A stretch of DNA of 62,000 nucleotides from Octopus vulgaris (GCA_951406725.2 OX597814.1:169218001-169280000); one strand, 5' to 3'. Numbered from the stretch's first letter, positions 37,046-50,573 are shown. Translations and numbers: made by a program. The notes: generated by a model not told the origin, from the letters alone.

Positions 37046-38958
37046 TATTAACTGCTTATAGTTTCTCCCCGTGGCATGTAATGGAATCTGTTTTCTATAC
37101 ATCTTCAGTGTTTATTGCCCCAGTGCATCTGCCATACGTAAAAACTATTCACCGTTTTCTATTTGTCTGTCTGTCTCCCTCTTCCACTTTTACTCTCTCT
37201 CATTGCTCACACGTGACCATCGTCCATCTTTCCTTTCCTCATGTGATCATCTTTCTTTTCCTTCAGTCTGTCATACAGACCAGACGCATTCTTATCTGTC
37301 TCCTTTTCTATCTTTTCTCTTGTCAAAGAATATTCCTCCAGTGTTTGTTACCTTACCTCGTCTGGCCCTCCATGTTTGTTTTCATTTGGTTTGTCATATG
37401 TCTCCACTGTCCTGTTTTTGTTACCAACTTTGACCCTCCGCAAATCCCAAATTTTATTTTGCTTTGCGAGAGCAACTGTTTTATGAAGCCTCATATTGTC
37501 GTTAATTGCTCGAAATCTTTCTTTATGTTACTTGTTTTGTTTTCCATTTATTTCTCTCATTGTTCTAATTCCCAAGTTTGCCTTCGTATTTCATGTTGTT
37601 TACGTTTTGTGACGTCCTGTATCCATATATGCATATATATATATATATATATATATATATATATATATATATATATATATATATATATATATATTTGTAA
37701 AAACGGTAAGATAACAAAAGAAAGAAAGAGACCTCAATATTATGTAAATAGAGGAAATTTATCCGTAAAATAACCGAAGAGATGGTATTGTGGATTTCCA
37801 CCTCGGCATCCAAATCTCAGAGTTTTATCTTGGCTATTGAATAATTGTCACATATTATTTTACAGATATATATATATATATATATACACATATACATGTA
37901 AGTATGTACATATATGTATGCAAATATGTATATATATTTATTTATATAATTATATGTTTATATATATATATATATATATATATATATATATATATATATA
38001 TATATATATATATATATATATATATATATATATATATATATATATATATATATATATATATATATTGTATATATTTGTATCATCATCATCATCATCGTTT
38101 ATAGATATATATGTGTATGTATATGTGTATAAATTTGTGTGTGTATATGTGTATACATTTGTGTCTGTATGTATATGTGTACACGTTTGTGTATGTGTGT
38201 GTGTATATATATGTATAAATATACAAACACACACGCACACACACATATATATGTTTGTGTATGTGTCTACATGTGTGTGTGTCTGCGTGTGTATGTATAC
38301 ACACACACACACACTTACACGAGGGCTTCAGGTCCTAGACCAGCTGATGCATTGTGTTCAGCTCACGTTGCTTTGCAATTACTTTTGACGTGTGACATAT
38401 CGTATACTGTGCACCTGGTCAGGTAACATAGAATTGATGGAGGGAGTGAATTCCATCAAATACACTGCACATGTAAGTCAAGGAACCAGCTTTATTGCAC
38501 GTTGTGTTAAATTAAATCTGTGCATAATATTGAGTATCACATTCAGTACAAACATTTTATCACTATAAACAAAATTGTTTGTGTAGTTTGTTCAGCAAGA
38601 AATTGTAGAATCATATGTCTTGGATCACTAGAAACTCTAGTACTTATGCATAATATATTCTATATATATCCTAGATTTGTGTGTGTGTATATGTATATTT
38701 ATATGTATATGTATATATATATATATATATATATATATATATATATATATATATATATATATATATATATATATATATATATATATATATATATATATAT
38801 ATATATATATAAATACAAGAGAGTGACCATGTGGTCTACTCTAGCACTAAAAATAGATCCGCAAGGTTTCAGCCCCAAAAGAAATTGTTTCCGATGAAAG
38901 TTAGCACTACTACCAGCACAAATAAACAGGGCAAATAAACATAGCAAAATGTAGATTA

Positions 38959-39036
38959 GTTCGAGACAATTGTTTCACTATTAATAAATTATGTAATTTT
39001 ACTTACATAAATTCATCTGTAGCTCCTCGGTCGAAC
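38959..39036 (-). ncRNA. Mirror hammerhead motif in the left arm of palindrome B
   Basis: Reverse complement of 39292-39369 with a G-U pair at the base of stem II. Confidence 0.6.
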
Positions 39037-39291
39037 CCGTCCAGAATACAATTTACCCAATCGCACGCTAGACTTCACCATAACGATAAACGCACGTGCG
39101 GTCGAGTCGATTGTACTCACTGTTATAATTTAAGTGCCCCTGTTAATTTTGGATGTAGTATCTGTTTCCGTGAATTTTGGTGGGCGATACACACTTAAAT
39201 TATAACAGCGAGTACAATCGACTCGACCGCACGTGCGTTTATCGTTATGGTGAAGTCTAGCGTGCGATTGGGTAAATTGTATTCTGGACGG

Positions 39292-39369
39292 GTTCGACCG
39301 AGGAGCTACAGATGAATTTATGTAAGTAAGATTACATAATTTATTAATAGCGAAACAATTGTCTCGAAC
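39292..39369 (+). ncRNA. Type I hammerhead motif (U4C core variant)
   Basis: gttcga CCGAGGA gcta...tagc GAAA c aatt GTC tcgaac: 6-bp stem I, G-C closed stem II, palindromic stem III. Confidence 0.65.
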
Positions 39370-39704
39370 TAATCTACATTTTGTTATGTTTATTTGCCCT
39401 GTTCATTTGTGCTGGTAGTAGTGCTAACTTTCATCGGAAACAATTTCTTTTGTGGCTGAAACCTTGCGGATCTATTTTTAGTGCTAGAGTAGACCACATG
39501 GTCACTCTCTTACATTTATGTATAAAATGTATCATAATCCGGGTCTTTTATGCACTAAGCCACTTGGTGGTAAATGGATGTACTATTAAATTAGTATCCA
39601 ATTTTATCACCCTTATCGGTTGTTTATATATATATATATATATATATATATATATATGTACATACATATACACACACACACACACATATATATATATACA
39701 TATC

Positions 39705-40360
39705 ATCATCATCATCATCATCGTTTAGCATCTGCTTCCCATGCTAGCATGGGTTGGACGGTTCAACTGGGGTCTGGGAAGCCAGAAGGCTGCACCAGGC
39801 CCAGTCTGATCTGTCAATGTTTCTACGGCTGGATGCCCTTCCTAACGCCAACCACTCCGTGAGTGTAGTGGGTGCTTTTTACGTGCCAGACGAGGCTGGC
39901 AAACGGCCACAATCGGATGGTGCTCTTTATGTGCCACCAGCACGGGGGCCAGGCGAGACTGGCAACGGCCACGAATGGATGGTGCTTTTTACGTGCCATA
40001 TATATGTATATATGTATCATCATCATCATCATCATTATCCTCGTTTAACATCCGTTTTCCATGCTAGCATGGGTTGGACGGTTCGACCGGGGTCTGGAAA
40101 GCCAGGAGGCTGCTCCAGGCTCGAGTCTGTTCTGGCAGAGTTTCTACAGCTGGATGCCCTTCCCAACACCAACCACTCCATGAGTGTAGTGGGTGCTTTT
40201 TACGTACCACCAGCACAGATACCAGGCGAGGCTGGCAATGGCCACGATTGGTTGGTGCTTTTTACGTGCCACCGGCACGGAAGCCAATCAAAGGCAGCAC
40301 TGGCATCAGCCATGTTCGGATGGTGCTTCTTATGTGCCACCGGCACAGGTATCGCAGCTA
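39705..40360 (-). mobile_element. Two tandem S2 copies
   Basis: S2 motifs at 39705-40005 and 40020-40360. Confidence 0.8.
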
Positions 40361-40395
40361 CAATTTCCATATATATATATTTATATATATATATT

Positions 40396-40712
40396 TGAGA
40401 CCCACCTTCGGTCGTGATTGACCATGGGATTACACTTAGAAAGTTACCCTCCCAGGCACAAGTCTGGGCATGCAGTCACCCATGCATACCAGACTCCCCT
40501 CTCCACGCCACCAGTGTTATCCAGAGGAAAGGCAACAGCAGATACAGCTTGGCACCTGTGACGTCACAACTCATTTCAACAGCTGAGTGAACTGGAGCAA
40601 CATGAAATAAAGTGTCTTGCTCAAGAACACAACACGCAGCCTGGTCTGTGATTTGAATTCACAACCTCACAATCGTAAACTTGATGCTCTAACCACTGAG
40701 CCATGTGCCTTC
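40396..40712 (-). mobile_element. SINE S4 (tRNA head, CORE-like domain)
   Basis: Minus strand ggcacatggctcagtggttagagc...gtgttcttgagcaagacactttatttcatgttgctccag. Confidence 0.75.
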
Positions 40713-49519: not shown

Positions 49520-49582
49520 TTTGAGAACGTCAACGTTTCTAGATTAGCCAAATAAAATCAGCATTTCTTTCGTCAGCTCAAA
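49520..49582 (-). ncRNA. Mirror hammerhead motif in the left arm of palindrome C
   Basis: Reverse complement of 49851-49913. Confidence 0.6.
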
Positions 49583-49850
49583 ATTTCTTAATTTGGATTT
49601 GGAAACACTAAAAAGAAAGAACTTTACCTCTCGGTAATTCATTTCTCTCTGTCATACTGCCTCGGTTCTCGCGGTTAAAATATAATGTTTGCTAGATAGA
49701 CCACGTGGGTGGAAGAGGAGTGCAGGAATTTACGCTTGCGCATTTTGAATTTGTTAGCACTGGCAGTTTGAGCTGGTTCATCTGAGGTGATAAGTTCGCC
49801 GAGAGGTAAAGTTCTTTCTTTTTAGTGTTTCCAAATCCAAATTAAGAAAT

Positions 49851-49913
49851 TTTGAGCTGACGAAAGAAATGCTGATTTTATTTGGCTAATCTAGAAACGT
49901 TGACGTTCTCAAA
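49851..49913 (+). ncRNA. Type I hammerhead motif
   Basis: tttgag CTGACGA a aga...tct a GAAA cgttgac GTT ctcaaa: 6-bp stem I, quasi-palindromic stem III. Confidence 0.6.
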
Positions 49914-50316
49914 CGATCTTTGTACTTGTGATATTTTTCTGTATTTACCTCCATACCTTCGTGAGTTATCTTGAGTAAACATTATCTGAGAGAAATTTTC
50001 TTTAAGTAGTAGAAATGGCTAAAAAATTTTTTTTGGCTGCTATTTCTATTAAGTTCAGTATGTGGCAAAGTAATTTATTTTACTAAGCCCTAATTATATA
50101 ATGTAATATTTTGAATTCGCCTTAAATGGTCCTTTTACATACTGAACACTTGGTGAAATTGATTAATTAATTTTACCCTCAATTGTTGATATATATATAT
50201 ATATATATAGAAATTCGGGGTGAGTACTTGATAATTATAAGCACCTGTGTATACCGTTTGGTGGTGTAGGTGGTGGAGTAAATTGATCAAAATAAAAACA
50301 TGATGCCAAGGATTCA

Positions 50317-50394
50317 GCGGTACATATGTTTCGGGCCTTTATTAGACAGATTTATAACAATGCATAATGTATGTCTGTGGCCTTCTTCAGCCGC
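50317..50394 (-). ncRNA. Mirror hammerhead motif in the left arm of palindrome D
   Basis: Exact reverse complement of 50436-50513. Confidence 0.7.
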
Positions 50395-50435
50395 GCACAA
50401 CAGCGTAACACATGTCCTTGTGGAAGCTGTTGTGC

Positions 50436-50513
50436 GCGGCTGAAGAAGGCCACAGACATACATTATGCATTGTTATAAATCTGTCTAATAAAGGCCCGAA
50501 ACATATGTACCGC
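50436..50513 (+). ncRNA. Type I hammerhead motif
   Basis: gcgg CTGAAGA a ggcc...ggccc GAAA c atat GTA ccgc; palindromic stem III acatatgt. Confidence 0.7.
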
Positions 50514-50573
50514 TGAATCCTTGGCATCATGTTTTTATTTTGATCAATATATATATATATATATATATATATA

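Follow-up and report, generated by a model that had tools for sequence, protein, structure and literature searches.

What are the palindromes embedded in the (TA)n microsatellites of this region of the Octopus vulgaris genome, and how were they inserted there? We analyzed a window of 62,000 nucleotides (nt) (GCA_951406725.2 OX597814.1:169218001-169280000) containing three such palindromes, hereafter B, C and D, each with two divergent hammerhead ribozyme motifs and a tail at one end only. An earlier note, made from the sequence alone, had proposed that they may form a distinct class of palindromic retrozyme-like elements. We found two related units in their neighbourhood: E, a single, non-palindromic hammerhead element, and B2, a relative of B. 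Our analysis indicates that the five units are probably dead insertion units of hammerhead-bearing Penelope-like elements (PLEs), or of short elements using PLE machinery, in (TA)n. As far as can be told, the palindromes represent a known signature of PLE insertion and not a distinct class, in four seemingly unrecorded sequence families.

Results

Palindrome B is made of two arms of 333 nt (38804-39136 and 39192-39524) with 97% identity and a 55-nt spacer. The arms of C (49328-49634 and 49799-50105) are 307 nt long, 99% identical and separated by 164 nt, and those of D (50279-50404 and 50426-50551) are 126 nt long, 99% identical and separated by 21 nt. Because the mismatches between arms gather at the outer boundary, the true ends of the tail-less arms were placed at about 38817 (B), 49334 (C) and 50548 (D). 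On the other side, a unique tail of 69-102 nt extends beyond the arm, to the right in B (39525-39626) and C (50106-50187) and to the left in D (50210-50278), which is the mirror image of B and C. Arrays of (TA)n or TA-like repeat were present on both sides of each palindrome, as seen with Tandem Repeats Finder (TRF) and in the printed sequence. The description of B, C and D as asymmetric palindromes embedded in (TA)n is therefore borne out.

From left to right, B follows a (TA)n microsatellite (38688-38810, TRF and sequence) and starts with the short, tail-less inverted copy on the minus strand (38811-39136), whose identity with the right arm is secure from about 38817. The central spacer (39137-39191) probably corresponds to extra 5' sequence of the less truncated copy, to judge from B2. 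It is followed on the plus strand by the direct copy, common with the inverted arm over 39192-39524, and by the 3' tail (39525-39626), which is carried by the direct copy only, contains a GGUG...CACC hairpin and runs into (TA)n. In the same way, C comprises a TA-rich microsatellite (49286-49333, TRF and sequence), a tail-less inverted copy (49334-49634, minus strand), a spacer (49635-49798), a direct copy (common part 49799-50105, plus strand) and a 3' tail (50106-50187, plus strand) that shows a weak likeness to the B tail and a GGUGAAAUU...AAUUUUACC hairpin. The tails of C and D face each other across 22 bp of microsatellite, read in the sequence as (TA)11 (50188-50209). In D, the tail (50210-50278) and the tail-bearing copy (common part 50279-50404) are on the minus strand; the spacer (50405-50425) and the short tail-less copy (50426-50548, plus strand) follow, the latter ending in GATCAAT next to (TA)n (50549-50580, TRF).

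As had been claimed, none of the palindromes encodes a protein. Open reading frames (ORFs) inside the elements gave no Pfam match at the gathering threshold, the sole match being Rtf2 at E = 0.047, far under the cut-off. The longest stop-free stretches within B, C and D gave no reverse transcriptase (RT), no GIY-YIG domain and nothing significant against Pfam.

Hammerhead motifs were searched on both strands with a structural descriptor (CUGANGA; closed helix II of at most 110 nt; GAAA; at least 2 outer pairs in helix III; U-H; helix I of at least 3 bp), and their coordinates were re-read by hand against the sequence. We observed five exact-core matches at three loci. Four of them were in C and D, one per arm, and the fifth lay at a new locus (35346-35450), within E. 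Allowing one core mismatch added both arms of B and three matches at two other loci (two overlapping at 2380, one at 6397), two of these three without a fully palindromic helix III. In 60 dinucleotide shuffles of the whole window, 0.017 exact-core matches were expected compared to the five found. With one core mismatch and a fully palindromic helix III, the expectation was 0.05 compared to eight. A covariance model of our own was ruled out as circular, since its training set would have been the same four motifs; the shuffle control addresses chance directly.

Each arm of B, C and D carries one hammerhead, on the plus strand in the right arm and on the minus strand in the left arm, both reading 5' to 3' away from the centre. 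On the sense strand of every copy, the hammerhead lies 110-280 nt upstream of the 3' end. The motif in the right arm of B (39291-39370) is GGUUCGA-CCGAGGA-(47 nt)-GAAA-CAAUUG-UC/UCGAACU, where the slash marks the predicted cleavage site, with a helix I of 7 bp, the core CCGAGGA (U4C) and a 47-nt helix II closed by GCUA...UAGC. Its counterpart in the left arm (38958-39037, minus strand) reads as CCGAGGA, G10.1-U11.1 and helix III CAAUUG, with a putative cleavage site after UC. In C, the right-arm motif (49851-49913) is UUUGAG-CUGACGA-(30-nt helix II)-GAAA-CGUUGACG-UU/CUCAAA, with helix II A-AGA...UCU-A, and the left-arm motif (49520-49582, minus strand) is identical to it. In D, the right arm (50436-50513) shows GCGG-CUGAAGA-(51-nt helix II)-GAAA-CAUAUG-UA/CCGC, with helix II A-GGCC...GGCC-C, and the left-arm hammerhead lies at 50317-50394 on the minus strand. 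The hammerhead of E (35343-35453, plus strand) is UCU-CUGAAGA-GGC-(86-nt helix II)-GCC-GAAA-CAGCUG-UC/AGA.

The conserved core of type I hammerheads (C3 U4 G5 A6 N7 G8 A9...G12 A13 A14 A15.1...U16.1 H17) is exact in C, D and E, and B departs from it in both arms by the single change U4 to C. Helix I is open-ended and measures 3-7 bp, and the closing stem of helix II 3-4 bp. The palindrome that makes up helix III has 6 nt in B, D and E, and 8 nt with a G-U pair in C; it is without a single loop nucleotide in any of the four families. At positions 10.1/11.1, B and E present G10.1-C11.1 without an extra nucleotide, and C and D an unpaired A after A9 followed by A.A or A.C. All three helices are unlike in sequence across B, C, D and E, yet pairing is kept in all of them.

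Since helix III has no loop nucleotides, a monomer would be unable to close it, and since it is a loop-less palindrome, the catalytic three-way junction would form only between two RNA molecules. For all four families, cofolded homodimers were predicted to adopt a domain-swapped double hammerhead lying 5.6-11.8 kcal/mol under two monomers, with helix II intramolecular and helices I and III intermolecular. The descriptor, the shuffles and the cofolding agree with the earlier claim of twin divergent type I hammerheads.

By contrast, the covariance-model support that the earlier note had asked for was not obtained from Rfam at any threshold used. The Rfam hammerhead models gave no match at gathering in the whole window, at E<=10 in 13.5 kb, or at E<=10 in an 86-nt slice on the C motif. 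This miss is likely due to the 30-86 nt helix II combined with the loop-less helix III. Although the earlier note had named such a failure among the grounds for rejecting its reading, so that the result formally counts against it, it is not a valid refutation, because the variants in the literature came from relaxed descriptors (RNAmotif) and not from covariance models. The motifs of B, C, D and E are genuine hammerhead motifs that a standard Rfam scan misses. The U4C change in B and the A.A or A.C combination at 10.1/11.1 in C and D may reduce their predicted activity.

The same database also brought up microRNA models. The centre of D (50347-50483) matched mir-5014 with 69.5 bits and E = 1e-13, for a gathering threshold of 101, and we rejected this reading as a generic match to a perfect hairpin. 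Sub-threshold matches to mir-297, mir-466 and others were likewise generic, to perfect hairpins and TA/CA repeats.

Units E and B2 lie about 3 kb upstream of B. Element E (35305-35636, plus strand), a single copy between two (TA)n arrays with its 3' end adjoining (TA)n, belongs to a fourth family unrelated to B, C and D. Directly after it, B2 (35681-35978) comprises a tail-less inverted copy (35681-35820, minus strand), equivalent to B from 39510 to 39373 and with its outer endpoint as in B, and a direct copy with tail (35821-35978, plus strand), equivalent to B from 39459 to 39614, in which no hammerhead is kept. Both outer ends of B, the 3' end of the tail and the end of the short arm, are thus present in B2; the inner breakpoints differ, and B2 has neither spacer nor hammerhead. 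This matches a variable 5' truncation with a constant 3' end. The extra central sequence of B2 runs on from the tail-less copy, not from the tail-bearing copy. Identity between B and B2 amounts to 87-91%, compared to 97% between the arms of B, so that the two arms of one unit arose together or were later homogenised. B and B2 are, on these identities, best taken as separate, older relatives.

In both places where two hammerhead units stand back to back, they share one microsatellite, with 44 bp of (TA)n between E and B2 (35637-35680) and 22 bp between C and D (50188-50209). This suggests repeated hits into one array, or a target regenerated by each insertion.

Long inverted repeats flanked by TA are also what terminal inverted repeat (TIR) transposons of the miniature inverted-repeat transposable element (MITE) type, or foldback DNA transposons with TA target duplications, would present, and the (TA)n flanks mask any TA target-site duplication. 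However, the ends are asymmetric, the 69-102 nt at one end having no inverted counterpart, and B and B2 differ in the internal part that is present, a pattern that fits 5' truncation or central deletion and not a fixed TIR MITE. In addition, the sense-strand ribozymes and the structured 3' end point to an RNA intermediate, and the symmetric foldback next door (50574-50916), which shows what a MITE looks like locally, is devoid of these features. We regard such an origin as very improbable, in line with the earlier view that an inverted structure with unequal ends speaks for an insertion mechanism and not for a TIR transposon.

B2 and E also bear on whether the palindrome itself is the transposing unit, which would set palindromic, non-autonomous hammerhead elements apart as a class. 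In its favour, the same layout is seen within 15 kb in three or four unrelated families, and B and B2 have both outer ends in common. Against it, in E the same kind of element exists as one copy without a palindrome, and B2 keeps the layout despite the loss of its hammerheads and centre. Moreover, the RNA of such a unit would be a perfect hairpin of 126-333 bp, hence a poor template, with only one sense ribozyme, and the known insertion behaviour of PLEs already explains the layout. A transposing palindrome is improbable on this evidence.

Pairwise comparison of B, C, D and E revealed nothing beyond chance apart from the tails of B and C, whose Smith-Waterman score was 27 compared to 15.5 +/- 2.4 and was attained by 1 of 300 shuffles. 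The absence of obvious similarity among B, C and D, as first described, therefore holds overall but not for these two tails, which are weakly but significantly alike. Each of them forms a GGUG...(AU-rich stem-loop)...(C)ACC hairpin some 15 nt away from the 3' end. A common 3' module would be expected if the 3' ends are recognised by one reverse transcriptase or by related ones.

At the other end, the tail-less arm was said to stop at an AT-rich site abutting the microsatellite. For B and C this can be made more precise, as their endpoints fall in TA-like tracts, whereas that of D is merely AT-rich. In B and B2, no other 12-mer tract of the element is as (TA)-like as the endpoint (top 1.2% of positions); in C, the endpoint shares the top (TA)-likeness score with other tracts (top 2%). 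The TA-like endpoints of B, B2 and C are the one new, modest clue of this work. Tentatively, and with the odds still against it, they might record how the inverted repeats and one-sided tails of PLEs come about, either because the second (TA)n end primes by microhomology at an internal UA-rich site or because the endonuclease resolves a fold-back there. If this is true genome-wide, short hammerhead elements would offer a natural series of junctions for reconstructing the still undefined PLE integration pathway.

The same endpoints could be read as the trace of an inverted duplication at the DNA level, in which replication template switching between a (TA)n hairpin and the internal TA-like tract made a single insertion palindromic and the second arm arose without reverse transcriptase. 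(TA)n is prone to fork stalling, the tail-less arms of B, B2 and C end in TA-like microhomology adjoining (TA)n, and the window holds several further palindromes without hammerheads. Yet four insertions from three families show the same architecture, which has also been described for many PLE families of other phyla; no (TA)n is present in the centres, and B and B2 share their endpoint at different loci. We therefore give this origin little credence.

Examples of such palindromes without hammerheads were observed near D and upstream of E. Directly to the right of the (TA)n that follows D lie two of them, one (50574-50916) foldback- or MITE-like with symmetric ends (TAGGGTATCTAC...) and one (51040-51420) longer and nested, both without hammerhead or one-sided tail. 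Upstream of E, two copies of a very abundant repeat resembling a short interspersed nuclear element (SINE), with at least 10 copies in the window, stand head to head (33448-33630 and 33668-33850; 89% identity, 37-nt spacer) between (TG)n and (ATAC)n microsatellites. This shows that palindromic pairs occur here beyond the hammerhead elements.

Among the other features of the window, a 171-nt non-coding insert (37695-37865), unrelated to the hammerhead elements and in which no hammerhead was found, interrupts a (TA)n array. It forms a filled/empty pair, as 37478-37699 resembles 41120-41340 (89% identity), where (TA)n is uninterrupted at 41264-41340. A stop-free stretch of 167 aa (42468-42968) gives the impression, by eye only, of a Tc1/mariner-type transposase fragment; its ATG-initiated ORF (42516-42971) had no Pfam match at E<=0.01. 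The right end (55072-62000) holds degenerate ORFs resembling those of long interspersed nuclear elements (LINEs), with a zinc knuckle and an Exo_endo_phos endonuclease. Two diverged copies, 57078-58089 and 60767-61784, are 84.5% identical, and the best relative of the endonuclease ORF in a collection of 5.8 billion proteins is 64% identical.

Discussion

The attribution of these units to PLEs is based on the resemblance of their anatomy, target and ribozyme to those reported for this group. PLE insertions are usually heavily truncated at the 5' end and stand next to an inverted, likewise 5'-truncated copy; they bear a tail at only one extremity and favour (TA)n (Craig et al. 2021, PMC8557442). 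The palindromic units display this inverted 5'-truncated copy adjoining the element and the tail at one end only. Naiad and nearly every Hydra family insert preferentially into (TA)n, and for Neptune the microsatellite bias has been attributed to the same endonuclease linker, as a proposal (PMC8557442). All five units are bounded on both sides by (TA)n or TA-rich arrays, as first noted for the three palindromes; these flanks may be the pre-existing target or a terminal repeat added on insertion. Hammerheads are known from the pseudo-long terminal repeats (pseudo-LTRs) of PLEs and are present in all canonical and Hydra PLEs (PMC8557442), and dual minimal hammerhead ribozymes on opposite strands, about 100-700 bp apart, have been ascribed to truncated PLEs (Cervera and de la Pena 2014, PMC4209133). 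In PLE hammerheads, helix II is long and helix I short, a nucleotide is left unpaired after A9 and is accompanied by G10.1-C11.1, and the palindromic helix III acts as a dimer (PMC4209133). Non-autonomous derivatives are known too, such as MRC1 in Chlamydomonas (PMC8557442) and retrozymes, which derive from the pseudo-LTRs of PLEs. The units described here could equally be heavily 5'-truncated 3' ends of autonomous PLEs.

Several observations weigh against this attribution. Pfam searches of ORFs of at least 130 aa revealed no RT or GIY-YIG ORF in the window, and six-frame segments of at least 70 aa contained nothing PLE-like by eye. No pseudo-LTR partial tandem of these sequences was found within the window either; the lack of both a tandem and a PLE ORF is expected if all local copies are heavily truncated. 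An exact 20-mer of the B/B2 tail had zero matches in metagenome_contigs and genome_contigs (collections that do not include the source genome), and a search through a spurious ORF spanning the B arm and tail gave no candidate for a further copy. As no RT/GIY-YIG ORF is present in the window and no outside copies were found, the link to PLEs is one of motif and architecture, not of homology. Furthermore, the tails of 69-102 nt are two to three times the published length of 30-40 bp (PMC8557442). No Rfam hammerhead model matched at E<=10, the B core carries U4C, C and D are without the G10.1-C11.1 pair, and ribozyme activity is a prediction only. Lastly, the short arm of D does not stop in a TA-like tract, and the asymmetry of B2 could also be explained by a central deletion of a B-like palindrome, so that it is no proof by itself of two primings.

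Could another retroelement have provided the machinery? Hammerhead-bearing SINE-like repeats are known in schistosomes, and SINE-like hammerhead elements mobilised by a microsatellite-specific LINE, for instance of the R4/Dong type, might produce insertions in (TA)n. LINE ORFs are present in the window, and in one octopus genome Dong-R4 was reported as the most abundant group of active LINEs (PMC13282606). A hammerhead with a palindromic helix III is however of the PLE type, and mobilisation by a LINE seems decidedly improbable to us.

Under the PLE attribution, each palindrome would consist of two copies of the 3' region of one element, placed head to head with their 5'-truncated ends meeting at the centre, one copy reaching the true 3' end (the tail) and the other stopping at an internal site. 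The twin divergent ribozymes would follow from this arrangement, since each of the head-to-head copies carries one sense-strand hammerhead. Beyond the observed anatomy, ribozyme motifs, inner and outer ends and TA-like endpoints, we infer an enzyme, an intermediate of RNA and a succession of priming events, as follows. A (TA)n-preferring GIY-YIG endonuclease would open the microsatellite, and one DNA end would prime cDNA synthesis at the 3' end of the RNA, giving the tail-bearing copy. The other (TA)n end would anneal to an internal UA-rich tract of the template RNA and give a second, inverted and tail-less cDNA. Both cDNAs would stop short and then be joined in the middle. We favour this route of two primings, which is backed by the TA-like ends of the short arms in B, B2 and C and by the extra centre of B2 contiguous with the tail-less copy. 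The ribozyme would serve the master element during its life cycle and is probably idle at these loci, since a transcript across a unit would contain one sense ribozyme and a long perfect hairpin.

A process of this type exists in LINE-1 twin priming, where the second DNA end primes internally on the RNA, leaving an inverted segment without the 3' end, and 5'-truncated cDNAs are joined mid-element. Unlike in the present units, where both arms copy the same region, the upstream part is inverted there with little or no duplication.

The main alternative within the PLE framework is a fold-back, in which a tail-primed cDNA snaps back and is copied, and a (TA)-specific endonuclease resolves the product at the first TA-like tract, removing one tail. 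The two arms copy each other almost perfectly (97-99%), the tail-less arms of B, B2 and C end in TA-like tracts that a (TA)n-preferring endonuclease could cut, and B2 is possibly a central-deletion derivative of a B-like palindrome. On the other hand, the extra centre of B2 is contiguous with the tail-less copy, and a simple snap-back predicts the opposite unless B2 is a later deletion; the endpoint of D is not TA-like. Fold-back is rather unlikely compared to two primings, in our judgement.

Neither a new class of element nor a new ribozyme is revealed by this locus. Its interest lies first in annotation, as these hammerhead elements sit in structures that repeat finders tend to label MITEs or unknown repeats, and recognising them as PLE-type units would improve the repeat annotation of this microsatellite-rich genome. 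Second, the junctions, with their TA-like tail-less end and independent inner breakpoints, provide small but concrete and testable clues to the unresolved mechanism of PLE integration.

As regards known systems, the units share with metazoan non-LTR retrozymes their non-coding nature, low GC content and type I hammerheads (Cervera and de la Pena 2020, PMC7229834; Li et al. 2026 preprint, 10.64898/2026.07.22.740005). A derivation of those retrozymes from PLE pseudo-LTRs and their mobilisation in trans have been proposed (PMC7229834; 10.64898/2026.07.22.740005). The proposed retrozyme likeness goes no further: retrozymes are arranged in tandem, head to tail (PMC7229834), and their units are excised and circularised, whereas the present copies are head-to-head or single and the window holds no tandem hammerhead units. 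Unlike in retrozymes, no transcript here would contain two sense ribozymes, and the element boundaries stand apart from the cleavage sites. We considered cleavage sites as element boundaries, as in a retrozyme or circular RNA model, and rejected them: no copy starts or stops there, the closest being the inner end of B2, 10 nt downstream, and copies reach upstream of the predicted site.

The hammerheads resemble the minimal hammerheads of PLEs (PMC4209133) in several ways: they are of type I, their helix II is long and their helix I short, and their palindromic 15.2-16.2 segment needs dimers. Each also has one of two further features, the unpaired nucleotide after A9 (C and D) or G10.1-C11.1 (B and E), and opposite-strand pairs a few hundred bp apart occur in both cases. 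They differ by a far longer helix II (30-86 nt, with internal hairpins) and by the U4C change in the B core, and their cleavage is predicted only.

As for whole insertions, a distinct class is not needed, the same architecture having been published for PLEs (PMC8557442, PMC4209133). Compared to the units of Neptune and Hydra (PMC8557442), the window has no RT/GIY-YIG ORF or pseudo-LTR and the tails measure 69-102 nt and not 30-40 bp; a clade within PLEs cannot be assigned without a protein. Overall, like the units of Neptune and Hydra, those described here are strongly truncated at the 5' end, abut an inverted copy, bear a tail on one side and lie in (TA)n, with a hammerhead in the 3'-terminal repeat region (PMC8557442).

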